A stretch of DNA of 64,000 bases from Ascoidea asiatica JCM 7603 (lineage: Eukaryota; Fungi; Ascomycota), in NCBI GenBank assembly GCA_001600695.1, contig BCKQ01000005.1, positions 328,732-392,731 on the forward strand, written 5' to 3'. Numbering within the stretch: the first letter of the stretch is position 1; the number at the start of each line of letters is the position of its first letter. This document shows positions 16,659 to 63,880 of this stretch, in pieces. The translations under genes and the position numbers were made by a program. The notes under the pieces were generated by a model that worked only from the letters and a program-made list of their open reading frames with translations, was not told where the DNA came from and did not search any database.

Positions 16659-17533
16659 TTATATAAAGGCATTCTGCTGTTTTTCTTCTTGTAGCATTAC
16701 ATTTACTAATTCTTGTAGAGGACCAAAATCTTTTTCATTAATTAAATCAAAATTTTTAGAAAATAAAACAAAATGCTTTAAACTTGTATTTAAATGAGTT
16801 TGTAAACCTAATTCAGTAATTTCATCAAAATGATGACAATAAATATGAGCATAAACTCTAAATAATCTTTTCATAATTGTTTTACTTAAAGCTAAAAATT
16901 GAGTTGGAAATGGTTGACCATTTTTAGTTGGAAAAATTTCATCATCATCAAAAAATTGTTGAATCCAAGTCATTAAATTTTCAATATAATTTGGAGCAGG
17001 TAAAGAAATTGGTTTTTTTGAATTTACATCTTGCCAAAGATATTCATATTCATTAGTTGCAATCATTCTTGGACAAGTTTTTGGAGAACAAAATTCAGTT
17101 ATTGTTCCATATAACATATTAATTTGATTATAAAAATCAACAAGGTGAAGAGCTAACCATTCATTTAAATCTTCATCTTTTGGTAATTTAACTGCTTGAG
17201 CTAAAGCAGAACCAGAACCTAAAGTTGCTTCTGCAAAATTTCTAATATCTCTATGAGATGTTATTGAAGAACCTTGAGTTGGGGAAGTAGACTTTATGGC
17301 CTTTGTTGTTGAATAAGGATTTATATTATTTCCAGTTTGTGTTTGAGTTGGACTTGAACTTTGATTGATTCTTTTGAATCCTCTGACTGTCCTCAAAGCA
17401 TGATTAGAATTTGTATTTAAGTGTCTAATTGAGTTAGTATAAATGAGAAAATAGAAAATAATAACCCTTAATATTTTTTGAGAAAGATAAAAGAAAAAAA
17501 GCAAACATACAGGCTTTGAAAGAAAGAAGACAT
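16659..17533 (-). CDS. MOB1: Mob1 kinase activator; two exons (17533-17511 and 17424-16659)
   Basis: [39 protein letters not shown]. Exon 1 (MSSFFQS plus CT) joins exon 2 in frame. Confidence 0.95.
17425..17510 (-). other. Spliceosomal intron of MOB1 (86 nt)
   Basis: 5' splice site GTATGT (17510-17505), branch point TACTAAC (17439-17433), 3' TAG ending at 17425; removal restores the frame. Confidence 0.93.
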
Positions 17534-17859: not shown

Positions 17860-18760
17860 CATTTTTGTTGTTTACACTTTTCCGTTTTGATCAGCATCAC
17901 GTAAACACAAAAAGTGCAAGCTTACTAAAGCCGTGATAATGGTCTCGTCCATGTCATGTGAAATAATCAATCACATGATAAAAACTTTTCTGCTGCTTTT
18001 GCAGTTTTTGCTGCTTTTGCAGTTAGGGAAGAAAAGAGAAGTGCTGAAAAAACAATGAAGAGATAATTCAGAAGCATTCCTCAACTTCCCAAGCATATGT
18101 TTGAAATAGAGGAAACAAATTAAAACTAAAAAAACAATGCTAATTAAATATACGTAAATTCTTGATCAAGAAACAGTTGGATGATTACTTGAGAGATGTT
18201 GTTCTCCTTTGAAAATGCAATGTAAATGTGATAGATTGATTAGCTTGATAGTTCGTACGAAATTTTTAGAATCCTCTTTTATCTTTAACTGATTCTAGGC
18301 AATTCTAGCTTTACGCGATAAAAACATGAAAACACAAAAATAAAAGAATAAAAAAATATGTCAGTATGAAAACATCAATATCAGTTATTTTCTTCGTGAT
18401 GTTTCTCAGATTTCGAGTTTGTGCAAAACGCTAAAAACATAAAAAAAAACATAAAAAAAAACAATCGCGTGCTGGAAAACAGTAAACAAAAGCGAATCTG
18501 AGTAAACAGAAGCAAAAAAGAGTGTTCGCTAATTTATCAGTGTTCGCTAACGGGTTTTGAGAATCCGGTGCCTGGATTTCATACCAAAACACGGTAAAAT
18601 CCACGTAATTTTTGGTTTTGAAATGGCGTTTGCAAAATTTGTTCGCTATTTCTGAATAAACGTTCTTTTAAGACGTTGGTGTTTGTTTGTTTGTTATCTT
18701 TTGCCTGTTTATTTGTTTGTTTGTATGTTTGCATGTTTATGTTTACGAGTCTTGCACAGA
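17860..18760. promoter_or_regulatory. Divergent MOB1/NRM1 cell-cycle promoter with forkhead and MCB/SCB-like sites
   Basis: GTAAACA/TGTTTAC at 17870, 17901, 18482, 18502, 18740; ACGCGA at 18313, TCGCGT at 18465; E-box CATGTG/CACATG at ~17955-17978. Confidence 0.6.
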
Positions 18761-19045: not shown

Positions 19046-20125
19046 ATGTCTCTGTTCAGTTCAAATAATTCAATAACTCGTTTACCTTTAGCTCCAATAG
19101 ATTCAAATGTTCATTTGAATAATAAATCATCTCCTTCCAAAAAGAAGTTTTATAAAAATAAAGATGATAATGATAAAAATTTAGATTTTTTTGATTATTC
19201 TAAATTTCTAAAAAAAGAAGAATCAAGTCTGATTTCAAAAAATATTTATACCGATTTTAAGATATCCAAATCTTATAAACAAAATGGTTCAAGTAATAAA
19301 AAACATATGAAAAATGATGATATATATATTGGTTCTGATATTCATATACTACATGCAACGAAACTAAAATCAAGATTACAATTAGCTTATTTCAAATTAT
19401 GTTCAAAAAAACAAATAAATTCTCTGGAAACTCCAATTAATAATAAAAATGAATTTATTTCAAAAAATAGTTCAACAAAAATTACTTTACCTTCATTAAC
19501 TGATTTAATTTCACAACAAAATATAACTTCTCTAACTCCTCCTGCTTCTACTTTTAATTTAAAATGTAAAGATATTATCAATTCAAAAAAAAATTCTGAA
19601 TTTAAATTACCTTTACCAAAATTAGATACATTCTCAAATAATATAAAAAATGATTCTATTAAAACTTTTATACCACAATCCCACAATTTATTTACTCCTC
19701 CAACAACTTCTACCCCTTTCAATATAAAAATTAATGCAAATTCTATGATAAAAAAAAATCTTAGTAATTTGAACATGAATACTAATATTAATAAATGTAA
19801 TAGTAATAATAACAATAATCTCAATAATTTTATAATTCCAAATACCTCTGTAACTTTTACTAATCAAGCTTTATCTGAATCTACCCCTTTTAAAAATATC
19901 AATGTATCTAATGAAAAAAATGTTAAAAGCTTTTCTCAACAAAGAAATATTCAATCTGATACTAACAAAGAGCGAATGTTATCATCTAGTCCTATAAAAC
20001 ATAGTAATTTAGATGTCAAAAAATCTAATGATTCAAATTATAATAATCAAGTTGACGAGAATTCAACTCCTTCATCTGTTGGTGCGGCTGCTAAATCATT
20101 ATTACAGTTGGCTTTCAATAGTTGA
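19046..20125 (+). CDS. NRM1: Nrm1/Whi5-family G1/S transcriptional co-repressor
   Basis: N-terminal RLPLAPI (D-box-like), GTB motif KLKSRLQLAYFK, C-terminal STP..GAAAKSLLQL. Confidence 0.75.
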   Translation: MSLFSSNNSITRLPLAPIDSNVHLNNKSSPSKKKFYKNKDDNDKNLDFFDYSKFLKKEESSLISKNIYTDFKISKSYKQNGSSNKKHMKNDDIYIGSDIHILHATKLKSRLQLAYFKLCSKKQINSLETPINNKNEFISKNSSTKITLPSLTDLISQQNITSLTPPASTFNLKCKDIINSKKNSEFKLPLPKLDTFSNNIKNDSIKTFIPQSHNLFTPPTTSTPFNIKINANSMIKKNLSNLNMNTNINKCNSNNNNNLNNFIIPNTSVTFTNQALSESTPFKNINVSNEKNVKSFSQQRNIQSDTNKERMLSSSPIKHSNLDVKKSNDSNYNNQVDENSTPSSVGAAAKSLLQLAFNS

Positions 20126-24539: not shown

Positions 24540-27244
24540 TTTTCTTCAATTTTGTTTGATAATTTCTCTATGGATTATATTTTGAATATATGATGAGTTT
24601 TAATTATTGAAATTGAAAAAACTCAATAATTCATTAATTCAGCTTTATAAATGAACAATAATAAACAATAATGAACTAAAATGAACTATAATGGGTAGTT
24701 AACGAAAACCGATTCACCGGTTTGAGTTTCTAAATAAAAGATAGAAAAAAGAAATCCGTACTACGGATTTCCATCTTTGGAATTCATAAGCCTTCTGCTT
24801 GAAAATAATTGAAGAAAAAAAAAATAAACAGTTTTTTGTAATTTTTGATGAAAGAAGGTAAGGATGAAATAGTAAAAATAGAATTTTTCAAGCTTATGAA
24901 AAAAAAAAGGTAACAAAAAGAATTGAGAAATGATTTAAAGAAAAACAGAAAAGAGGGAGTTTGGTGTCATAATTTTAAAAAAATTAACAAAGATAGAAGA
25001 ACAAGAAGAAACTTAAAATGTTTGATAAAATAATTTTGAAGAGAACTTAAAGAATGATTTTGTGCTTTGAAGAATTTACTATTATCTAATAAAGATTCAA
25101 AAAATACTAAATATTTTTCATGAGTTTTTTTAGTTTTTGCATAAGTCAAATATAAAAAATAATTGTACCATCACCCATTATTTAAGTTTGAGGATAATTG
25201 AAAAGGTATGATGAAAATAAGAGCTAGTCATTAATCAAAAAAAGAAGTATGAAATATGTAAGGAATTTATTTAATGTTTTGGAAAACGGTTGTGCATTTA
25301 AAGCTTATGTAGTTTGCACATTGCTCAAGTTAAATTTTGAAATAAAATGAGGTTTTAGAAGAAAATAATTCATGTTTGGGTTGATTTAATCGGACTTTGA
25401 AAAATGTTTAAAAAGGTTAGCTAGATAGTGAGTGCAGTCAAATCGTTGTGATAGATGCATTTGTAAATTCTGAGTCGGTATTTTTTGTGATTTTAATGGA
25501 AAAAAAATTGATTACCCAATAAGTTCATTAGTTATTTCAGTTGCTAGGTGACTTTGAATGTGAAATTTGCATCATCCATGCCTATTTCTTTCAGATAGTT
25601 ACAGTAAGTTATAAATTTTGAGCCAAAATGAAAAAGGTTATAAAGCCAATCAATCATTTAAATTAAATTGAATAAAAATCGAGCTTAGTTTGTTTTTGTG
25701 AGTGCAGAAACAGATTCTTTCATTCTGCACCTTTAATTGCAGAAATCTTTCCAAATTTTTTTTAAACTGTCAAAGAAATGCTGAAAACTTTACCTCTTTG
25801 TTCTACAATGCTCATCTTAATCTTCAATTAATCAATTTTTCGCTCTTCAAACCAAATCTTTAAACAATCGCCATCAAATAAAAATGTGACCAAATATGTG
25901 GATCTCAATTGAAATACTTTTTTTTTCAGATGTTTTTATTATCTATCAATAAATAATTTTGAGAAATAAAACCCAGCACATAAAAGCTTTTTCCATTAAG
26001 TTAGTAGGTATTCATCTTCTTTCTCTTTCTATTTCCTTCACTTTTCTTTAAACGTGGCTTTAGGTAAAACGTAATAAAACAGTAAATATAAACATTGCAA
26101 TAATCTCAGATGAGAATATTCCACTGACTGTGTAATTTCATTCAAACAGCTTGAAGTCACACAAAATTCAAAATTGCCAAAAGTTGTTTGAAGAAAGTCT
26201 CAGCAGAAAGTGCAAAAAGGCACGTGATTGTTGATGTTTTTTAATGTTTTGTAAACAATCCTTCTGTACATCGGTGTGCGTAGTTATGCCTAGCGTCGTA
26301 AAAAGGTAAACAATTTGGAAAAACGGTTCTGCTTTGATTCGGTTTAGGGTTGGTCTTTATTTGTTTACATTTAAAATAGCGTTATTCAGGCCAGTTGAAG
26401 AAATACCGTCGAAAAAGCATAAACAGATCTTCTCTTTAATCTGCCGTGAACGTCATATTGACTTTATATAGTGAATAATCATGTATAAAGATGTTTTTTT
26501 AAAATATAGTTTAAAACCTAAAGTTAAATTTTGCTAGGTTAAAATTTAGAGTTCACTTTAAAGTTCTCAAGAGGTGTAAATATGTGTGCTTTGTGAGAGG
26601 CTGCATACTTGATAACTTTAAAAATTATTTAATATATTAATCAAAATTATTATAAAATTTAGCAGGTCTGAAACTATGATTATCATATATTGGAGAAATA
26701 AATTTAGTTCAAATTTAACATTAAAGTGATATTTTATTTAAAATTTTTTGAAATAACAAGGTCAGATATTATATTTTTTTGATAACAATTTCTTATAACT
26801 ACAGCGAGTTTCTCTTACATTTTGTATATTTAATAGATTAGTGTTTTTGTTGTTTATTTTACTTCAATGAAATGAAAACATTAGTTTCTCGTAATCATAA
26901 TATACTATTTGCAAATGACTTTGAAGAATTCTTAAAATTGGATTTCATCAACTAACAAAATCATGTTTCTTCAAATAATATAAATTAAAAGAATTCTCCT
27001 CTCAATTCTTCTTCTCTTTTTTTTTATTTCAAAAGATTAAATTAACAACTTTTATTATTACTATTATAATTTTTTTATACAACCTAAATTACTTTTGTTT
27101 GTTGCTTATATTTCAGTTTCCTATTATTATATCTTGCTTCATAAAATATTTCTGCTCAATATATATTATTTTGTTTTCAATTAGAATTATTTGTGTTTAA
27201 TATTCAAGAATTTAATTTATATTAAGAAAAAATCAAAACAAAAA

Positions 27245-27827
27245 ATGACTGATCCATTCAATCCAAATCTGTTTTTTTTGCAAAGTCAAGCAAATCCAAA
27301 TGGTTTTCCAAATAATCAAGGACCAGTTCAATTTGTAACTATGTCTCAACTTGTGAAACCTAATTATTATTATAATTTTATTATAACAGAATCACCAGTT
27401 GATGCTAGACAAGCAACATTGAAATCAAAACGTTTAACAGGTCCTTTCAAATTATATCTAGATACAAATGATAAAGATCCAAGAATACAATATTTTGTTC
27501 AATTTACTATCAATGATGTTACTACAGCCACCAACCAAATTAATAATTTAACTCATTTTTCTGATCAAAGTATATTCATGGGTAAAAGATTTTATTTTGG
27601 AGAATATTCAAAAAATGAAGATCGTTATAATTTTTTAATTAAAGATTTAGCTGTTACAAAAATTGGAGAATATACTTTTTCAGTAGCTTTATTGAAATAT
27701 TTTTTAATGGAAGATAAAAAGCCAATATATATTAAGACTATTACAACTCCTAAATTTTCTGTGAAGTCTGCAAGAAATTATTATAAAAATAAAAAACTGG
27801 AAAAAAAACAAACACAATCTGATACTT

Positions 27828-27858
<31 letters not shown>

Positions 27859-28135
27859 TAACAATAACAATAATAACAATGGCAATAATGGTAATAATGG
27901 TAGCATTAACATTAATGCACAATTATTTCCAATTATGGTTTCTTATTCAAATAATCTCAATTACAATTCAAATTCTACCCAAATGAATCAATTTCCAAAT
28001 CAAACTCTAAATCAAAATCAAAGAGAAATAAATAATATGAACTCACTGGATGTCACCCCAGATTTACTTGATTCTTTTCTTAAAAATAATTATACTCAAA
28101 GTTTTAATTCCAACGAGGGCGATAAACATTATTAA
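27245..28135 (+). CDS. Divergent velvet-domain (VosA/VelC-like) protein
   Basis: YNFIITESPVDAR..KRLTGPFKLYL and FLIKDLAVTKIGEYTFSVALL...ITTPKFSVKSARNY resemble the velvet blocks QQP..AR/RRPIDPPPIVQL and FVF.DLSVR.EG.FRL.F/S..F.V.S.K.F. First ATG at 27245. Confidence 0.65.
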
Positions 28136-31845: not shown

Positions 31846-32990
31846 TAATGTTGTCAATTTGAAATATTTTTTCTTATGATTGATTTATTTAAGATGAAAT
31901 TTAAGCCAAGAAAGCAAAAAAATAAAGGATATTTAGATAGCATTTTATATATTGAAAATAATTGGAAAAAAACAAATGAGTAAATTATTCAAAAGCATAG
32001 AATTGAAGCACTCAGAAAAAACAAAAAAACAAAAAAACAAAAAAGCGAAAAAATTAATTTCAAGACCGAAAAAAATAGAAGTTTAATCAATGAATGCGCG
32101 TAAAAAAAAAAATATAAATAAGTTTTGAATATATTGAAAGTTCATTATTATGAAAAAAATTATAAAATGGGCTAATACAGCATAATAAATCGGTGTAGGA
32201 AAATCAGCTCGCAAAAGATATTGAAAAAATGAAATATAATAATATTAAGTTTGTGAGCTAAAAATTAGGCAATAGATTAATAATCATAATCATAATCTCA
32301 TCAATGCTAAAAGAGATAATGATTCCTAAACAATTTCCAGAAAGAAAAGTTTGGCTTTGAAGCTCCAAAATGCATACCCAAGCTAAAATACCGGCAGGCA
32401 GCATTAAATATTACCCTTTTCAATAAAACACAAGAGCAGCCATAGAGCATTGTTTACCGGGAAATGGATTGTTCGGAAGGATCAGGTTTCGCCCGCATTT
32501 AAATAATTCTTTCGCAGTCCGCAAAAAAAGCAATTTTGTGAAAAAATATGCACAGCGCAGTAATAAAACCTAAGAGTGCATTCTGCGCATTTTACAGCGC
32601 ACGCTTTTTTAGATATTGCGCAAAACTGGTTCTTGGTGTTGATTTAGGACGACGTGGCTGATGCTTCAAAAAAAGCGGAAAAACCTGATTTTGGTGGGCA
32701 TCATGAGAGGAAAAACTATTGAAGCGGATTAACCTTATCGGATGATCGATTTGTAATTTGGCTTTACGGAAGTGGAAACGTGTGATGTTTTAGTCTTTAT
32801 CAATTAGTGGAGAAAAATAACAATTGTTAAGGTGAACGAACAACAGAAAATATTTACTAATAAATAGTATTAAATTTTTCTGTTTTATCTTGTATATCAT
32901 ATTGAAATATTAAATATTAAATATTAATTATTGGATATTAGTTATGAGAAATTGGATAGTAGATATTAGATAGAGTTTATTATATTAAAA

Positions 32991-34088
32991 ATGGATACAA
33001 AAGAAAATAGAATAATAAATATTGGAATTGTTGGTACTGGATTATTTGCTCAAGAGCATTTAAAAGCATTAACATCAAAAAAATTAAATTGTAAATTTCA
33101 AATTATTGGATGTTTTAATCGTACAAAATCAAAAGCAATTGAATTTAATGAAATTTATAAAAAATTAACAAAAAGTGAAAAAAATTTAAAAATTTATGAA
33201 GATATTGAAGAAATTTTTAAAGATAAAGAAATTGAAGTAATTGATGGATTATTACCTGTTGAAAATAATTTAAATTTAGTTAAATTAGCAATTAAATATA
33301 AAAAATCATTATGTTTTGAAAAACCAATTTCAAATAATTTTACTAATGGATTAGAAATTGTTAAATTAAGTGAAAAAAATAAATTAACAGTTTTAATTTT
33401 AGAAAATTTTTTATATCATAAAATTAATTCAATTATTAAAGAAAAATTAAAATTAATTGGAGATATTATATCATTTACATATAATTCAACAGGACCATTT
33501 TATTTTGAAAATAAATATTTAAAAACTTCATGGAGAAAAAATCCTCATCATATTGGAGGATTTTTATTAGATGGAGGAGTTCATCAATTAGCATATTTAA
33601 CAGATTTTTTAGGTCAAATTGAAAAAATATCAGGATTTAGTAAACAAGTTAGAAAAGAAAGTGGTACAAATGATATTTTATATTCAATTGTTAAATTAAA
33701 AGATGATAAAAATATTATTGGAAGTTTTACATATGGTAGTGCATTTGCTTCAACAGATAAAAGTAATTATTTAAAAATTTATGGTATGAAAGGTACAATA
33801 ATTTTTGATTTTTCACCAAAATTTAAAAAACCAATTTTAAAAATTTGTTTAGGAGAATCAGGAGAAGAAAATAATGGAAATTATGAAACTATTGAAATTG
33901 AAGTTGATAAAGAAGATAATAAAGGTATTGGAGAAGAATTTTGTAATTTATATGAAAGTATTATTAAAAAAGATAAAAGTTTATTGAAAGGTAAGCCAGA
34001 AGTTGCACTTCATCATTTGGCAGTTATTGATGCTGCATTAAAGAGTAATGATCTAGGAGGTGATTCAGTAAAAGTAGCTGACTGGTAA
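32991..34088 (+). CDS. Gfo/Idh/MocA family NAD(P)-dependent oxidoreductase (YMR315W-like)
   Basis: IGIVGTGLFA, EKPI, LENF, TSWRKNP.HIGGFLLDGGVHQLA. Confidence 0.9.
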   Translation: MDTKENRIINIGIVGTGLFAQEHLKALTSKKLNCKFQIIGCFNRTKSKAIEFNEIYKKLTKSEKNLKIYEDIEEIFKDKEIEVIDGLLPVENNLNLVKLAIKYKKSLCFEKPISNNFTNGLEIVKLSEKNKLTVLILENFLYHKINSIIKEKLKLIGDIISFTYNSTGPFYFENKYLKTSWRKNPHHIGGFLLDGGVHQLAYLTDFLGQIEKISGFSKQVRKESGTNDILYSIVKLKDDKNIIGSFTYGSAFASTDKSNYLKIYGMKGTIIFDFSPKFKKPILKICLGESGEENNGNYETIEIEVDKEDNKGIGEEFCNLYESIIKKDKSLLKGKPEVALHHLAVIDAALKSNDLGGDSVKVADW

Positions 34089-34196
34089 TTTATAGAAAAT
34101 AAAGTATATAGTAAGTAATATTGGTAACATAAGTAAATAAATAATTTCTATTTTCAATATACTATATATAAAAAAAAAAAAAAAAAATTCAAAACT

Positions 34197-34363
34197 GAAG
34201 ACCAAAAGTATGGTACTCTTACAATGAGGCCATCTTTGAGGTACTTTTTATTTAGAGACCATATTCATGGGATTTCTTTTTTTGAGACCAGGATTCAGGT
34301 AGCTCTTATTTGAGACCATTTTTATGGTATCTTTTGAGATGAGACCACTCCCGTGGCACTCTT
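34197..34363. repeat. Six-copy degenerate tandem array (28-29-bp period) of GAGACCA-N6-WGGTACTYT upstream of PGK1
   Basis: Copies start at 34197, 34225, 34254, 34283, 34311 and 34340. The spacer is always 6 nt. Confidence 0.85.
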
Positions 34364-34732
34364 CCCCCGGGCTCACCTTGCTATGGCTGTTGTGGGCTGT
34401 TGGGTGATGATTGGCGGCGAGCGAGTGAGCTGCACCTTGTTCACTGCCATCACCACACTCATCTCTAGTTTACTGCATTTATTGTACTAAATTAACTAGA
34501 AGAATACCCACTGGACCCACTTGACCCTCACTGTGATATATAAATACTTCCAACTTTCTCTATTTATTGAACTGGGCTTTATCTTTTATTTCAATAATTT
34601 CAACTTTTATTAGAATTATTATTATAAATTAAACTATTATATTATATTTTATAAACTATTGAATACTATTTTTATTAATATTATTATTATATTTAAACTC
34701 AATTAATCCAATTTAATCTTAAATACTCAATT

Positions 34733-35983
34733 ATGTCTCTTTCAAATAAATTATCTGTTAAAGATTTAGAATTAACTGGTAAAAGAGTTTTTATTAGAGT
34801 TGATTTTAATGTACCTTTAGATGGTAAAAAAATTACAAATAATCAAAGAATTGTTGCTGCTTTACCAACAATTAAATATGTTTTAGAAAAAAATCCAAAA
34901 GTTGTAATATTAGCTTCTCATTTAGGTAGACCAAATGGTAAAGTTACTGATAAATTTTCTTTAGCTCCAGTTGCAACTGAATTAGAATCTTTATTATCTC
35001 AAAAAGTTACTTTCTTAAATGATTGTGTAGGTGATGATGTATTAAATTCTGTTAATTCTGCAAAAGATGGTTCAGTAATTTTATTAGAAAATTTAAGATT
35101 TCATATTGAAGAAGAAGGTAGTCAAAAAATTGATGGTAAAAAAGTTAAAGCAAGTAAAGATGATGTTACTAAATTTAGAAATCAATTATCATCTTTAGCT
35201 GATATTTATATAAATGATGCTTTTGGTACTGCTCATAGAGCTCATTCTTCAATGGTTGGTTTTGATTTACCACAAAGAGCTTCTGGTTTCTTAATGTCAA
35301 AAGAATTAACTTTTTTCGCAAAAGCTTTAGAAAATCCAGTTAGACCTTTCTTAGCAATTTTAGGTGGTGCTAAAGTTTCTGATAAAATTCAATTAATTGA
35401 TAATTTATTAGATAAAGTTGATATTATTATAATTGGTGGTGGTATGGCTTTTACTTTTAATAAAGTTATTAGTAATATGTCTATTGGTACATCTTTATTT
35501 GATGAAGCTGGTTCCAAAACTGTTCCTGCTTTAGTTGAAAAAGCTAAAAAAAATAATGTTAAATTAGTTTTACCAATTGATTTTGTTACTGCTGATAAAT
35601 TTGATAAAGATGCTGAAACAAGTTATGCAACTTTAGAACAAGGTATTCCTGATCAATGGATGGGTCTTGATGCTGGTCCAAAATCAATTAAATTATTTGA
35701 AGAAACAATTTCTGAAGCTAAAACTATTGTATGGAATGGTCCACCAGGTGTTTTTGAATTTGAAAAATTTGCTACTGGTACAAAATCAATGTTGGCTGCT
35801 TGTATTAAATCTTGTGAAAATGGTAATACTGTTATTGTTGGTGGTGGTGATACTGCTACTGTTGCCAAAAAATTTGGTGGTGCAGATAAATTATCTCATG
35901 TATCTACTGGTGGTGGTGCATCTTTAGAATTATTAGAAGGTAAAGCTTTACCAGGTGTTGTTTTCTTATCTGATAAAGAATAA
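34733..35983 (+). CDS. PGK1: Phosphoglycerate kinase
   Basis: [66 protein letters not shown] at ~34537. Confidence 0.99.
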
Positions 35984-36282: not shown

Positions 36283-36562
36283 CTATCGTCTATATACTTT
36301 ATCTAAAGAATTTAATGAATTCATCATTACCATAACTTCATTACTATTTTCTTTTAAATTATTCGAAGAATTCAAGACATTTTTCTTTGTTGAAATTTTA
36401 ATTTCATTTGCATAAAGTCTTAAAGATTTTGCAACTGGTCCACCTTTACTTAACATATTCAGTAATAAAGTACTAAAATTTATACTCATTTCATTCCAAT
36501 AATAATTTATTAAATTTTTATTATTTAAATTACTATTTTTTATTAAATATTCATATAAATTA

Positions 36563-36622
<60 letters not shown>

Positions 36623-37752
36623 GTAGTAGTAGTAGTAGTAGTAGTATTACTAGCAGTATTTGATTGAAGAAAATTAGACCAAAAATTTATTGAAATTTTG
36701 TCAGAATTTTGAGAATTATAAATTGGTAAATTAATTGAATTTAATATTGAATTACAAAAATCATTTAAAAAAATAGCAATATTTGAAATTCTATTCATTG
36801 TTGAATCAAAATTTCTTGGAGATGTTAAAACTTTTGAGAATAAATTTATTGAATAATTTAAATTATTTGATAACATTGAATTAAAAGAAATTAATAAAGA
36901 ATTTTGATCAATTATATATAAAGATAAAAATAATAATTTAATATTATTTTTATTTTTTTCAATATTTTTTGAACTAAATTTATTATTATTAATTGAGAAA
37001 TTTTGAATTAAATTTGAATAAATTTTAATTAAATTTAATTTATAAGAAGATAATAAAGTTTTATAATCTTTAAATAATTTTAAAGAATTTAAATTATCAT
37101 TTTTTAATAAATTATTTAAATAATAATAGTTTTTAATTAAATTTATATTAAATAAAGAATCATTTGATTGAAAATTATTTTCAATAGAATTTTCAATAGA
37201 ATTTTCAATAGAATTTTCAATAGAATTTTGAAAATTATTTTGAATATCATTATAAATATTAATAAAAGAAGTGAATAAATTTATGAAATAAATAAAATTT
37301 TTTAACAAATTTGAAGTATTATAAATTTTTGTTAAAGAATTATTTAATTTTTTATAATTATTAAAAGGAATTATTAAATTTTTATCAATTTTTTCAAATT
37401 GAGAATTTAAATGATCAATTGAAGGTAATAAATTTGAATTAATTAAATGATTAAATTTAAAATTTTTATTAAATTCATCAATTAAAAATTCATAATTTGT
37501 AGAAGAAATTGAATTTAATTTTTCATTAACTTCTAAAATATCAAAATTTAATTTTTTAATTGGATTTTTTATATCTAAAGTAGCATCAGAAGAAGAAATA
37601 TTGTCATTTAAAATATAATCATTATTCATTGAAGATAATAAAGAATTTGCATAAGTAATTGGTTGGAAATCATCATTTGTAAAATCTTTGAACTCATCTA
37701 ATTCTTTATCCAAAACCTCTAAACTTGAATCTATGATTTTAGTGTTGTCCAT
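36283..37752 (-). CDS. COG5: COG complex subunit 5
   Basis: DF.P..YANSLL, LDI..PIKKLNFDI.E, C-terminal KGGPVAKSLR. Contains poly-T/poly-N insertions and NSIE repeats. Confidence 0.8.
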
Positions 37753-38422
37753 CTTTGGTGGATTGCAATTGAAGTCCTGAATGAACCTCTAAGAAGATAT
37801 GATATGGTATGATATTATATCAATCGATTGATATATTTTATTTCATTGAAAGCATCTATTGATATTTCAATCAATGATATTTCAGTCAATAATATTTCAG
37901 TCAATAATATTTCAAATCAGATATATTTCAATCAGTATCCAAAACCAACAAAACCCTTTCAATCTCCAATCTCCAATCTCCAATCTCCAATCTTCAATCT
38001 TCTCTCAGCGCTCTTTTGTAACGTCAACGTTGAAGTTAAGAAAAAAACTGTCACCCGGCGGTTAAAGGAAAGCACCGGGGAAAAAAGCAGCGGAGGCGGA
38101 AACGCGGACAGGAACTGGGTTGAAACTAAAAAAGGCAATCCACGACAACGGAACAGCAGCGGAAACCACTACTGTGGATGTAATGCAACCACACCCGCTC
38201 TAACGCTTTTAAAGGTGTGCATATGCTTTGTTTTGCATGTAGAGACGTATGCAATCTTATGCCGCTAGATGCATGGCACGAGGCGGCAAAAAAGGGTGTT
38301 CGTTAAAGTGTTCGTGAAGAGAGCAAAACACTGTTTGGCAACATATTTTTGAATTTGAGAAACTGGCAAAATGCTGGCTAGTTTTTTTTCAAATGTATGG
38401 AGGAATTTAACTGAAAATAATT

Positions 38423-38985: not shown

Positions 38986-41900
38986 ATGGATAATCAATAC
39001 CTTGCTTCTTTAGAAGAAACTTTAAGATTGGCTACTTTACCAGATACTGATACAATTAAAAATGCAACTGCTAATTTAAAAAAAAATTTCTATTCAGATT
39101 CAAAATCTTTACCTGCAATGATTCATATCTTTCAAAATCATTCTGATGATTCAATTAAACAAATAGCTGCTGTTGAATCAAGAAAATTAGTTCAAAAACA
39201 TTGGGCTAATATTGATAATAATACTAAATCTCAAATTAGACCTTCTTTATTATCTCAAGCTTTATCAAATTCAAATTCAAAATTATTTAATCATAATATT
39301 GCAAGATTAATTACTTCAATTGCTGATATAGATTTATCAAAAGGTAATTGGAATGAATTATTACCAACTTTAGTTTCAAATAGTACTGAAAATATAAATC
39401 AAAATGCAATTTATATCATTTATACTCTTTTAGAATCTTATAATCCTGTTATATGTAAAAAAGAATATGTTAATGATTTATTATCTTTATTTGCTAAAAT
39501 TTTAACTGAACAATCAATTGATTTAGATTTAAAAACAACTGCTTTATTATCTTTATCTTTAATTGCAACTGTAATTGAATCAAGTGGTGATAATGATCAT
39601 GATCATGAAGATAATGATCAACATGATCATCCTCATGATGATGATGAATCTTATGCTGAAAAAGAAATTGATGAAACTTTAGCTGCAAATTTTCAATCTT
39701 TAATAACTCCAATGATTAATGTATTAAAATTAGTTGTTCAATCAAATGATACTATTAATGCAAAAGAAGTATTTAATGCTTTTAATGATTTTATTTATCT
39801 TGATAATAAATTATTAGGTGATAATTTATTAACTTTAATTAATGTAATGTTTGAAATTGCTTTAAATAAAAATAATGTTGAAGAAGAAATTAGAGTAATG
39901 GCTTTAACATTTTTATCTCGTGTAATTTCATTAAGAAAAACAAAAGTTACTCAAAATAAATTAGGTCCATCTTTTACTTTATCTACTCTTAAAATTGCTT
40001 CTGAACCTGTTGATATTGATGATGAATTAAATAATGAAGATGAAGATAATGAAAATGAAGAAAGTACTCCTGGTGCTTTAGCCTTAAAACTTTTATGTGA
40101 TTTATCAACTGAATTACCTCCTTCTCAAACTATTTTACCTTTATTTGAAACTTTACCTTCTTTATTAAATTCTTCTGATAAATTTGAAAGAAGAGCTGGT
40201 ATATTAGCTATTGGTTTAACAACTGGTGGTGCTCCAGATTATGTTAATATTCATTTATCAAAATTAATTCCACTTTTAATTAATGGTTTAAAAGATTCAG
40301 AGTTAATTGTAAAATTAGCAACTTTAAAAACTGTTAGTGAATTAACAACTGAATTACAAGATGGTATTACTGAATATCATGAACATTTATTACCTTTAAT
40401 AATTGAAATTATTGATTCTGCAACTAATATTATGGTTTATAAAAATGCAACTTTTGCTTTAGATGGTTTAATTGAATATATGAATCATGATGCTATTTTA
40501 ATTTATTTAGAACCATTAATGAATAAACTTTTCCAAATGTTGCAAAATTCTGATTCTCCTTCTTTAAGTACTGCAATTGTTTCTGCTATTGGTTCAACTG
40601 CTTTTGCCGCAGGTAAAGCTTTTATTCCATATTTTAATCAGTCTTTACAATTATTAGAACCATTAATACATTCTCAATCTGATCCATCTAAAAAAGATAG
40701 TGAACTTCCAGAAGTTGAAATTGAATTAAAAGCTTCAACATTTGAAAATATTTCAACTATGGCTAGAGCTGTTGGTCCAGAACCATTTGCCAAATTTGCT
40801 GAACCTTTAGTTAATTCTGCTTATAATTCCATGAATTCGGATGCTCCAAGATTAAGAGAATCTGGTTTCGCTTTTGTTTCAAATATGGCTAAAGTTTATG
40901 GTAAAGATTTTACTCCATTTTTAGAAAAATTAGTTCCAGAAATTTTCAAATGTTTAGAACAAGAAGAAATTAATGCTGATGAATTAGTTAATGAAATTGA
41001 TCCAAATGATTCAACATTTTCTGTTCAAGATATTATTGATGGTGCTGCTGGTGAAGATGAAGATGATTTAGATGGAAAATTTCAACTTCATACTGGTATT
41101 ACTATGGAAAAAGAGATTGCAGCTTTAGCTTTAGCTGAATTAGCTATTGCTACAGGAAATGATTTTGCTAAATATATTGAAAGTTCTATAAAAATTCTTA
41201 ATGATCAAATTGATAATTCTTTTGGTATTGTTCAAGCAGCATTAAACTCTCTTTGGAAAATTGTTGTTGCAATGTTTAAAGCTAATTATATAAATCCAAG
41301 TGAAAATAAAGATATAATTAAATATCCAATTGGTGCAGTAACAGAATCTTATGTTAATTCTGATATTTTAGCTATGATTAAATTAGCAAGATCTAAATCT
41401 TTAGAAACTTTACAAAATGAATATGGTTTAACTCTTGTTTATACAATTTTGGATAATTTTACTGAATCAATTAAAACAATTGGTCCAATAGCTATAATGG
41501 ATAATGGAGATAGTTCTGAATTAGAACAATTATGTGTTGAATTAATGAAAATTATTAAAGGTGAACATCCATGTCAGATGGATGAAGATAAAATTGAAGA
41601 AGATGAGGATACATCAGAAATGGAAGCTTCTTTATATGATTCAGCTTTAGAAACTTTAGTTTCGTTATCAATAGCTTTAGGAACTGATTTTAATAAAGTA
41701 TTTCAATCATTTAAAGATGTTATTATTGGTCAATTAAATAGTAAATCAAAAACTAAAAGAAGTTCAATTATTGGATCTTTAGCAGAAATTTGTTTAGGAT
41801 TAAAAGATTCAAATTCATATTCTAAAGAATTATTAGAAATATTTATTGGTATTTTAAGTAATGATAAAGCCTTAGATGTTAGAAGTAATTCAGCTTATGG

Positions 41901-42459
41901 TATTGGAATAATTATTGAAAATTCTTCAGAAGATTTTTCTTCAGTTTATCCAAATATAATGAATGAATTATCAAAATTATTAAATAAAACTGAAAAAGAA
42001 GCTAATAAACATATTGATGATGAAAATGGAACTGAAACTATCAATAGATCATATGCTAATGCATGTGGATGTGTTTCTAGATTAATTTTGAAAAATTCTT
42101 CAGTTATTCCATTAAGTGATGTATTACCAGTTTTAATTTCACATTTACCAATTGCTTCAGCTTTTGAAGAAAATGCTCCAATATTTGAATTAATTTTAAA
42201 ATTATATCAAGAAAATAATGCATATATTTTATCAGAAACTGCAACTGTTGTTGGTATATTTTCTGCTGTATTCAAAAAAGAATTAGAAATTACTAAATTA
42301 GAAAATGAATCCACTTTAGGTAGAGAACAAAATATTGATACCTTAAAACAATTTCAAAGTCCAGAATTAAAAAATAAAATTATTGAATTATTAAAATTCT
42401 TAGATGGTAAATATAATGGAATTGTCTCTAATGATGAAATTTTAAAAACTATTATTTAA
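38986..42459 (+). CDS. KAP123: Karyopherin beta (importin-4 family)
   Basis: HEAT-repeat protein, QIAAVESRKL, LRESGFAFVSNMAKVYG, ESTLGRE near the C-terminus; synteny with SWI4/FLO8. Confidence 0.92.
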   Translation: MDNQYLASLEETLRLATLPDTDTIKNATANLKKNFYSDSKSLPAMIHIFQNHSDDSIKQIAAVESRKLVQKHWANIDNNTKSQIRPSLLSQALSNSNSKLFNHNIARLITSIADIDLSKGNWNELLPTLVSNSTENINQNAIYIIYTLLESYNPVICKKEYVNDLLSLFAKILTEQSIDLDLKTTALLSLSLIATVIESSGDNDHDHEDNDQHDHPHDDDESYAEKEIDETLAANFQSLITPMINVLKLVVQSNDTINAKEVFNAFNDFIYLDNKLLGDNLLTLINVMFEIALNKNNVEEEIRVMALTFLSRVISLRKTKVTQNKLGPSFTLSTLKIASEPVDIDDELNNEDEDNENEESTPGALALKLLCDLSTELPPSQTILPLFETLPSLLNSSDKFERRAGILAIGLTTGGAPDYVNIHLSKLIPLLINGLKDSELIVKLATLKTVSELTTELQDGITEYHEHLLPLIIEIIDSATNIMVYKNATFALDGLIEYMNHDAILIYLEPLMNKLFQMLQNSDSPSLSTAIVSAIGSTAFAAGKAFIPYFNQSLQLLEPLIHSQSDPSKKDSELPEVEIELKASTFENISTMARAVGPEPFAKFAEPLVNSAYNSMNSDAPRLRESGFAFVSNMAKVYGKDFTPFLEKLVPEIFKCLEQEEINADELVNEIDPNDSTFSVQDIIDGAAGEDEDDLDGKFQLHTGITMEKEIAALALAELAIATGNDFAKYIESSIKILNDQIDNSFGIVQAALNSLWKIVVAMFKANYINPSENKDIIKYPIGAVTESYVNSDILAMIKLARSKSLETLQNEYGLTLVYTILDNFTESIKTIGPIAIMDNGDSSELEQLCVELMKIIKGEHPCQMDEDKIEEDEDTSEMEASLYDSALETLVSLSIALGTDFNKVFQSFKDVIIGQLNSKSKTKRSSIIGSLAEICLGLKDSNSYSKELLEIFIGILSNDKALDVRSNSAYGIGIIIENSSEDFSSVYPNIMNELSKLLNKTEKEANKHIDDENGTETINRSYANACGCVSRLILKNSSVIPLSDVLPVLISHLPIASAFEENAPIFELILKLYQENNAYILSETATVVGIFSAVFKKELEITKLENESTLGREQNIDTLKQFQSPELKNKIIELLKFLDGKYNGIVSNDEILKTII

Positions 42460-63300: not shown

Positions 63301-63489
63301 AACGCATGAAGACCCAGCAAAGTTACTCTCTTCAGCATCCAATTGTATAAAGTTAATATCATCTGAGCTTGGATCTAAATCTAATGCTGGTCGACTAGTG
63401 TTTCTATTGATTGCCTGATTTAATTTTACATTTTGAGTTAATGAAAGCAATTCATCTTCGAATTTGGATTTCTGAGAACTTCTGAACAT
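60340..63489 (-). CDS. POL3: DNA polymerase delta catalytic subunit
   Basis: Exo motifs SFDIEC / GYN..NFD / YCLKDA, LDFASLYPS, KISANSVYG, YGDTDS, KGIETVRRD, CysA/CysB motifs. Confidence 0.98.
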   Translation of the reverse strand: MFRSSQKSKFEDELLSLTQNVKLNQAINRNTSRPALDLDPSSDDINFIQLDAEESNFAGSSCVRFFGVTDKGNSIMCNVTGFLHYFYVPVSMTFTKSHIKTFLEYFRNNGFDNVCQIEIVSKESIWGYNNNEKSSFLKIVVSHAKSIGKVRSAFERGQIQFQEFFKSGTIMTYDNIAYTLRMMIDCRITGVSWLTLPKAKYNVLTNERSKLSNCQIECSIHYKDLISHPSEGQWSTIPTLRILSFDIECSSRKGHFPDAKNDSVIQIANVVQRFGEPAPFKNVVFTLNTCSPIVGCDVISNTTEPQMLRAWKDFVVQIDPDIIIGYNTQNFDIPYLLDRAQALGVTDFPYFGRMKNIKQEAKSSTFSSRAYGTKENKITIIDGRIQFDLYQYFVREVKMRSYKLNNVSALYLGEQKEDVHHTIITDLQNGDPETRRRLAVYCLKDAFLPMRLLHKMMCLVNYTEMARVTGVPFSFLLSRGQQIKVLSQLFRKSLEHDIVIPNFTSGGGGDEPYEGATVIEPVRGFHEIPIATLDFASLYPSIIIAHNLCYTTLLSQQTIQRLKLIEGKDYTKTPIGECFIKSHLKKGILPTILEELLGARKKAKSDLKEEKDVFKKDVLNGRQLALKISANSVYGVTGATNGKLPCLAISSSITAFGRMMIEATKNEVEKHYCKKNGFKYDAEVVYGDTDSVMVKFGYEDLKKCMELGEEAANLVTKKLFKAPVKLEFEKVYYPYLLINKKRYAGLYWTNCEKYDKIDTKGIETVRRDNCKLVANVMTKILELILVKRDVNGAEDFVKKVIADLLQNKIDLSELVISKSLGAEYAGKQAHAELAKRMRERDPGSAPSVGDRVAYVIIRNSSTKAFEKSEDPLYVLKNGLAIDSTYYLQQQLAKPLMRIFEPILGENKAKQLLTGAHTRKVIMGRGGSRGSTVDNNNNNISSNKNGGNGGLGGLMKFAKKVNTCKICKTPCEGALCNNCEDKGDQIFAEQIAELNSLETKFSRLWTQCQRCQGSLTHEVICSNNDCSIFYMREKCQIDIQNTLEELDKFK

Positions 63490-63631: not shown

Positions 63632-63880
63632 AAGATTATTTGAAAAGAATAAATTATAGAACTGCAAGAGTACCAGTGGTTTGGACTCGTATCAACTCAC
63701 TTTGAAAAACTGAAGCTCGCTGGGTGATACATTATAAACTTTCAAAATTTTTAACGTTTATTAAAAAATAAAAAATTAACATTACTAAGTGAAAGTTGAA
63801 GATTTCATTCGTTTTATTTTATTGAAATTAAAATCAGTATTTGATCTAACAGAAAAACATTAGATATTACCCAAAGGAAA

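Follow-up and report, generated by a model that had tools for sequence, protein, structure and literature searches.

The upstream region of the phosphoglycerate kinase (PGK) gene in the yeast Ascoidea asiatica contains six related units arranged head to tail, and we asked what kind of signal this array represents and whether it belongs to PGK at all. The original prediction had combined two ideas: (i) the units consist of half-sites held at a fixed distance by selection for protein binding, as opposed to a decaying satellite; and (ii) they form a lineage-specific activator system for PGK and other glycolytic genes, bound by a dimeric factor. We evaluated both ideas using the window, the 64-kb stretch of DNA that surrounds the array (positions 328732-392731 of contig C5; coordinates below are counted from its first base), and the 20.3-Mb, 71-contig assembly to which it belongs.

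The local architecture is as predicted. Six plus-strand units succeed one another at periods of 28, 29, 29, 28 and 29 bp, for a total of about 167 bp, and they end 370 bp and begin 536 bp upstream of the PGK start codon, where a distance of roughly 370-540 bp had been anticipated (Table 1). The core pattern, GAGACCA-N6-WGG, is exact in four of the six units, and the remaining two each carry a single mismatch (AAGACCA in unit 1 and GAGGCCA in unit 2). The spacer is 6 nt long in all six units and its letters vary, again as had been described. Tandem Repeats Finder reported the array with a period of 29 bp, 4.3 copies and a score of 81. Allowing at most one mismatch, we counted 12 occurrences of the pattern in the window versus 1.45 expected from shuffled sequence, and none of 100 shuffles reached 12.

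Table 1. Coordinates of the motif units and of neighboring features in the window.
Feature	Position	Strand	Remarks
Single motif copy	17931..17946	-	One mismatch; divergent promoter between ORFs ending at 17504 (-) and starting at 19046 (+)
GFO/IDH/MocA-type oxidoreductase gene	32991..34088	+	Upstream neighbor of PGK
TATATA and A18 run	34162..34187	+	Directly upstream of array; presumed 3'-end formation region of the upstream gene
Whole array	34197..34363	+	Six head-to-tail units, period 28-29 bp
Unit 1	34197..34224	+	AAGACCA-N6-TGGTACTCTT; one left-arm mismatch
Unit 2	34225..34253	+	GAGGCCA-N6-AGGTACTTTT; one mismatch
Unit 3	34254..34282	+	GAGACCA-N6-TGGGATTTCT; exact core
Unit 4	34283..34310	+	GAGACCA-N6-AGGTAGCTCT; exact core
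Unit 5	34311..34339	+	GAGACCA-N6-TGGTATCTTT; exact core
Unit 6	34340..34363	+	GAGACCA-N6-TGGCACTCTT; exact core; abuts GC-rich island
GC-rich island	34355..34530	none	45-62% GC; between array and TATA box
TATATAA	34537..34543	+	196 bp before PGK ATG, 174 bp after array
PGK gene	34733..35983	+	Pfam PGK, E 1e-152
Single motif copy	38162..38177	+	One mismatch; divergent promoter between 37752 (-) and the importin gene at 38986 (+)
Single motif copy	63673..63688	-	One mismatch (GAGTCCA variant); 184 bp upstream of ATG at 63489 (-)

The array starts 109 bp past the stop codon of the oxidoreductase gene, and the A18 run lies only 10 bp ahead of it. On its other side, the GC-rich island stands out from a background of about 20% GC (20-26% for the genome) and probably holds the gene-specific elements of the PGK promoter. 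We note that a 9-bp repeat, ACCCACTGG, is present in 2.4 copies at 34506-34527, directly upstream of the TATA box.

A search of the whole assembly placed the array in a much wider setting. GAGACCA-N6-WGG occurs 439 times as an exact match, versus 16 times for a control pattern read backward. A spacer of five bases gave 35 matches (control 13) and one of seven gave 7 (control 12), so that N6 exceeds N5 and N7 by 12- to 60-fold; this was the comparison that the original prediction had proposed, and its outcome is decisive. The approximately 440 strict copies fall at roughly 350 loci, most of them as singletons. A matrix built from 63 sites revealed that the right arm is longer than WGG and reads T-G-G-n-W-C-T-T-C-T, giving a full motif of 23 bp, GAGACCA-N6-TGG-n-W-CTTCT, in which the right outer arm (n-W-C-T-T-C-T) is weaker. 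The extended pattern GAGACCA-N6-TGGKWCTY had 50 matches in the whole assembly and its control had none. Read in reverse, the right arm becomes AAGA-C/T-CCA or AGAGTACCA, which is the left arm with one extra base, and the 23-bp site is therefore a quasi-palindrome. Its CCA and TGG cores are 10 bp, or one helical turn, apart, and the six spacer positions of the matrix hold all four bases. Hence, the PGK array is not specific to PGK; it is a local pile-up of a genome-wide 23-bp intergenic signal.

Inverted cores with a fixed spacer are typical of a homodimer with a fixed linker. The site found here combines such cores, spaced by one turn, with a free spacer and outer arms of unequal length, and this suggests a dimer or a two-module protein as its reader, in keeping with the dimeric factor that had been proposed.

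PGK is also not the only locus with an array. Head-to-tail arrays of 2-7 units with a period of 27-29 bp are present at about 20 other loci, and across these unrelated loci the copies share one orientation and a near-invariant period of 28 +/- 1 bp. We compared units within 11 arrays and found a pairwise identity of 0.74 at motif columns, 0.35 in the spacer and 0.34 in the linker; between arrays, identity at spacer and linker columns was 0.33 and 0.35. Since the spacer and linker letters are randomized and the arms are kept, the arrays are not young duplications. A young tandem satellite was rejected on the same numbers, as units are not alike over their full length and their spacer and linker identities equal the between-array background. 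The arms and the register are thus what is selected, a signature expected of a protein-sized footprint repeated at a fixed pitch. The pitch itself resembles what steric packing of footprints about 27 bp wide would give, and we infer that 5-7 units, or 140-200 bp, would cover about one nucleosome. With a period of 28 bp, adjacent sites look toward different sides of the helix, and same-face cooperative binding is therefore not implied.

These data bear on the possibility that the motif is a selfish or neutral repeat, either a minisatellite or a transposon-derived subterminal repeat, without a function for the host. The single period shared by head-to-tail arrays at about 20 loci would be natural for such a family, as would the weak similarity between the PGK array and another array (75% over 125 bp). 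We nevertheless regard this origin as very improbable: outside the motif all positions are fully randomized while the arms are conserved, the length of the spacer is invariant, the majority of copies stand alone and have no terminal repeats, the sampled copies lie entirely outside coding DNA, and the orthologous promoter in Ascoidea rubescens also has a copy even though the PGK proteins of the two species are only 81% identical. The claim that fixed-distance half-sites are under selection, and are not remnants of a decaying satellite, is upheld by both the N6-specific excess and the restriction of identity to the arms.

We then considered where the sites lie relative to genes, relying on about 30 loci of 3 kb and on gene models that are ORF calls only, so that some "intergenic" or "convergent" assignments may be wrong. 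All 30 of the first-listed strict sites on contig C1 (about 22 independent loci) are outside ORFs of at least 100 aa; with the ORF cover of the window, about 59%, the chance of such an outcome is p ~3e-9. Twenty loci could be classified, of which nine are divergent, nine tandem and two convergent. Sites in divergent regions occupy a roughly central position, with 268-540 bp separating them from the nearer ATG. In eight of the nine tandem regions they lie 80-199 bp past the upstream stop codon, with a distance to the next ATG that ranges from 377 to 1077 bp. The anchor in tandem regions therefore looks like the upstream 3' end and not the downstream start, and PGK conforms to this arrangement. 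Orientation of the motif relative to genes is variable, as would be expected for a near-symmetric site that is read on DNA.

An alternative is that the motif acts in RNA, as a transcribed hairpin in the 3' UTR of the upstream gene or in a non-coding RNA, and is read by an RNA-binding protein. GAGACCA can pair with TGGT-n-CTC in each unit, and the single-stranded array folds somewhat better than shuffled sequence (z -2.2). Against this, the arms are conserved in sequence and not through compensatory change, copies occur in both orientations relative to the flanking genes and also in divergent promoters, the array has no Rfam or tRNA match, and it begins past the likely poly(A) signals. We give this explanation hardly any credence.

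Base composition around the sites is distinctive. Sites are found in or at the edge of GC-rich patches, with an average of 30-37% GC versus about 21%. GC-rich islands of 200-500 bp and 40-60% GC, compared with about 10-20% for intergenic DNA, were seen at 32300-32800 and 34350-34530 of the window and at other loci, and they seem to mark regulatory regions genome-wide. In addition, 6 of the 12 CACGTG boxes in 127 kb are within 75 bp of a motif site, far above chance, and at several loci, including on contig C1 of A. asiatica, such boxes are 5-20 bp from motif copies. The motif and CACGTG may form a composite element with a bHLH protein of the Cbf1/Tye7 type.

The second idea in the original prediction, an activator specific to PGK or glycolysis, makes a claim about neighboring genes, and here the genome-wide distribution is unfavorable. 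Strict copies are located beside genes of every kind. Genes that face the motif encode a WD40 protein, a DUF1689 protein, a peptidase M3, methionyl-tRNA synthetase, an amino-acid permease and a cyclin, as well as Rad54, Aha1, a WH1-domain protein, an EamA transporter and a UBA/thioredoxin-like protein, and we found no pathway common to the motif-flanking genes.

Glycolytic promoters gave a more nuanced result. Within about 1.2 kb upstream, eight of nine lower-glycolysis promoters have a copy with at most one mismatch (PGK, two TDH, ENO, FBA, two PYK and TPI), versus 5 of 20 control promoters from the window (Fisher p 0.002, with PGK included); as PGK is the ascertained case and the numbers are small, these figures somewhat overstate the enrichment. 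A copy is present at both PYK genes and at one of the two ENO genes that we examined, the FBA copy is weak, and the TPI copy is exact and at -473. For glycolysis as a whole (10 of 16 versus 5 of 20 control promoters) the difference is marginal, p 0.03. No copy was found in the upstream 1.2 kb or so of PGI, of three of four hexokinase-family genes, of one of two PFK genes or of one of two ENO genes. When spacers were compared in 10 kb of DNA upstream of lower-glycolysis genes, N6 gave 10 matches versus a mean of 2.4 for the others; in 100 kb of control DNA it gave 13 versus a mean of 4.25. Of the two ribosomal-protein promoters examined, one has no copy and one has a weak copy, so there is no Rap1-like link to those genes in this pair. 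Enrichment at glycolytic promoters thus exists to a moderate degree in the lower part of the pathway, and upper-glycolysis promoters are mostly without the motif. We conclude that the motif is a general one, moderately enriched at some very strong promoters.

A different sequence is a more attractive candidate for a pathway-specific site. The GC-rich word CACCACCAGA recurs in the TDH, PYK, TPI and FBA promoters, and in PGK as CCATCACCACA (34451-34463). It lies closer to the TATA box, with 280-430 bp between it and the downstream ATG, and other intergenic DNA of the window is almost devoid of it. The word is a better candidate for a glycolysis-specific site than GAGACCA-N6-WGG and may be where a regulator of this pathway binds.

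Taken together, these observations make it unlikely that the motif is the upstream activating sequence (UAS) of a lineage-specific activator of PGK, glycolytic or highly expressed genes that has replaced Rap1/Gcr1 or Tye7/Gal4. The excess at lower-glycolysis promoters, the N6 preference in their upstream DNA, a distance between array and TATA box that is classical for a UAS, and the retention of the motif at the A. rubescens PGK promoter would all agree with such an activator. However, at most of the roughly 350 loci the neighboring genes are unrelated, the upper-glycolysis and ENO promoters listed above lack the motif, the ribosomal-protein promoters have a weak copy or none, copies are present in convergent terminator regions, and the word shared by glycolytic promoters nearer the TATA box is the better candidate.

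We note several features of the glycolytic genes themselves. They are multi-copy, with five TDH, three ENO, two PYK, two TPI and four hexokinase-family genes, and two of the TDH copies form a tandem duplicate. The loci include C31:19387, C31:22003, C49:3807 and C56:1930 and involve contigs C5, C30, C1, C3, C6 and C10. The two TPI loci, on the small contigs C49 and C56, are identical including their flanks, and these twin contigs are probably duplicate contigs or haplotigs.

How old the motif is can be judged from related species. The neighborhood from PGK to an importin gene is syntenic with that of A. rubescens, with 70% identity for the importin and 81% for PGK. In A. rubescens the PGK promoter is divergent with a CWH43-like gene and contains two copies, one exact (-585) and one inverted with a single mismatch (-548), on either side of a CACGTG (local segment 9416-9468). 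An exact copy arose by chance in 159 of 50,000 shuffles of this 838-bp promoter. In 67 kb of the same A. rubescens contig, N6 had five intergenic matches with at most one mismatch, compared with 0.5 on average for spacers of eight other lengths, although outside PGK the sample is thin and its three matches are weak. Among blocks conserved between the PGK promoters of the two Ascoidea species, only TGAGACCAC exceeded shuffled sequence. The motif was not found in the PGK promoter of Saccharomycopsis crataegensis, nor in that of a second yeast (public run). On the sequences compared, the motif is at least genus-wide at the PGK promoter and not detectably older, and as far as they reach, the lineage restriction that had been proposed holds.

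We compared the motif with known binding sites. In S. cerevisiae, the PGK UAS holds Rap1 and Abf1 sites. Simple scans of the A. asiatica PGK upstream region (34089-34732) detected no consensus site for Rap1, Reb1, Tbf1, Cbf1/Tye7, Abf1, Mcm1 or Gal4. The CArG box of Mcm1/SRF, CC(A/T)6GG, is likewise a CC...GG palindrome that is read by a dimer and widely used in yeast promoters; it was rejected since the cores here are eight bases apart (CC-N8-GG) where the box has six, the spacer accepts all four bases, and there is no CC[AT]6GG in 34089-34732. The Zap1 element, ACC-N5-GGT (ACCTTNAAGGT), differs from the ACC-N8-GGT of the motif, whose excess is gone once the spacer is one base shorter. Rap1 binds tandem hemisites of the ACACCCRYACAYM type, and we found no ACCCA..CA upstream of PGK; moreover, the motif pair is inverted and not direct. 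An Abf1 site (RTCRY-N5-ACG) is likewise absent from the PGK upstream region and has different arms, and a search of the genome for BAF1_ABF1 (PF04684) gave no match at E <= 0.001, with control genomes that were uninformative for this fungal family. Consensus scans and spacer counts thus agree with the earlier statement that the geometry is none of those of Mcm1, Zap1 or Gal4, and they extend it to Rap1, Abf1, Reb1, Tbf1 and Cbf1. In the literature we encountered CCA-N6-TGG only as the BstXI restriction site, and nothing relevant on a promoter motif in Ascoidea.

Zinc-cluster proteins of the Gal4/Ppr1 type deserve separate mention. A Ppr1-type Zn2Cys6 site, CGG-N6-CCG, shares with the motif two inverted 3-bp cores and exactly six free bases, at one turn from center to center. 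However, the triplets of the motif are CCA and TGG instead of CGG and CCG, its unequal arms extend 4-7 bases outward with the right arm one base longer, and it is far more abundant than the sites of any pathway-specific zinc-cluster regulon; CGG-N11-CCG was absent as well. The resemblance is one of geometry only.

The closest parallels are the general regulatory factors of budding yeasts, whose sites include RTCRYN5ACG for Abf1, TTACCCG for Reb1 and ACACCCRYACAYM for Rap1. With these sites the motif shares hundreds of copies, far above chance and with one fixed, N6-specific architecture (439 versus 16), confinement to intergenic DNA (30 of 30 listed sites), neighbors of all functions, extra use at strong promoters and a position between transcription units. 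With Abf1 it also shares a bipartite site and a fixed, sequence-free spacer. It differs in being longer (23 bp), quasi-palindromic and of another sequence, and in its strictly phased head-to-tail arrays of 5-7 copies, which occur at about 20 loci and have not been described for Abf1, Reb1 or Rap1 sites. Homotypic clusters of transcription factor sites likewise gather several copies of a single site in a regulatory region, which selection retains as the DNA around them drifts, but the Ascoidea copies additionally share orientation and a 28 +/- 1 bp period across unrelated loci.

Another class of widespread intergenic element is the replication origin. In Pichia pastoris, a promoter-linked, GC-rich origin motif (GC-ACS) has a TYGAAC core and a poly(dA) tract nearby (PMC3945215). 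The A. asiatica motif resembles it in being GC-rich and promoter-associated, in long intergenic regions of a budding yeast and with poly(dA) in the vicinity, as exemplified by the A18 run 10 bp before the PGK array. A density of about one locus per 30-60 kb, an intergenic and GC-rich context in an AT-rich genome, and presence in convergent regions would all suit an element that recruits the origin recognition machinery. In contrast, the motif is unrelated in sequence to the TYGAAC core, the P. pastoris element is rarer than expected in convergent regions and is not arrayed, origins are not known to carry arrays of 5-7 copies, the flanks of the A. asiatica sites have no general poly(dA) enrichment, and both the enrichment at strong promoters and the pairing with CACGTG point to transcription. 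Hence, we consider an origin element of this kind decidedly improbable.

Based on its abundance, geometry and placement, we think it likely that the PGK array is a set of close-packed sites for a putative, probably dimeric, general regulatory or boundary DNA-binding protein. The lineage-specific system with a dimeric factor that had been envisaged thus remains the best reading in its lineage restriction and in its putative, probably dimeric protein, but not as an activator system for PGK or glycolysis. We propose that one abundant sequence-specific protein of Ascoidea yeasts binds all six sites. A dimer or two-module protein would contact two successive major grooves on one face of the helix and ignore the six bases between them. 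The protein would mark intergenic DNA in the middle of divergent promoters and just beyond the terminators of upstream genes, where it would probably keep the DNA nucleosome-free and shield the downstream promoter from incoming transcription. In the case of PGK, the stretch from the 3' end of the oxidoreductase gene to the GC-rich island and TATA box holds six sites over about one nucleosome's length, and the array may bound or open a very strong promoter on its upstream side, as opposed to being a glycolysis-specific switch.

Placement in divergent centers, past terminators and in some convergent regions, in either orientation, suggests a boundary or chromatin-opening role. Such a role would fit the post-terminator position at least as well as activation does, and a classical pathway activator would fit the overall distribution less well. 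The two convergent, terminator-only loci among 20 argue against a pure activator and not against a boundary factor. Reb1 and Rap1 are roadblocks to polymerase in S. cerevisiae, and by analogy the Ascoidea protein may possibly act in the same manner. A more detailed version of this proposal, which we offer only tentatively and with the odds somewhat against it, is that a previously undescribed Ascoidea boundary factor uses 23-bp sites stacked every 28 bp to build barriers of nucleosome length (5-7 copies, 140-200 bp) past terminators and in the middle of divergent regions, as a graded roadblock and chromatin opener that would take the place of factors of the Abf1/Reb1/Rap1 type.

General regulatory factors set up promoter chromatin in yeasts and stop transcriptional interference, and they have been swapped during evolution. 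To our knowledge, only a handful have been characterized, all in model species. The clean statistics, strict geometry, conservation in a second species and natural arrays of the Ascoidea motif should allow the responsible protein to be fished out by DNA-affinity capture. The system also provides two test cases: (i) how a very AT-rich genome marks its regulatory DNA; and (ii) whether the number of sites, from one to seven or more packed copies, tunes the strength of a barrier or promoter. In addition, for annotation of the A. asiatica genome, motif and GC-rich islands jointly provide a practical marker of control regions between genes.

Our comparison with A. rubescens also yielded observations on the surrounding genes. 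No homolog was found there for the DUF1689 protein, whose gene lies beside an array, in a word-based search that was swamped by asparagine runs; many ORFs are rich in long runs of this kind, as expected from the extreme AT content. The order of PGK, a 489-aa gene and the importin gene is kept (window 36283-37752 and 38986-42459 versus A. rubescens segment 13930-19094), with the middle 489-aa gene inverted between the species and a 742-aa gene missing in A. asiatica. Velvet regulators are uncommon in budding yeasts, and the window contains a velvet-like gene at 27191-28135. The VosA velvet site, which we considered on account of this gene, is an 11-nt consensus of the CTGGCCaaGGC type (PMC3876986) and bears no resemblance to the motif. 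The A. rubescens homolog of the velvet-like gene (segment 19643-20599, 31% identity) gives a weak Pfam Velvet match.
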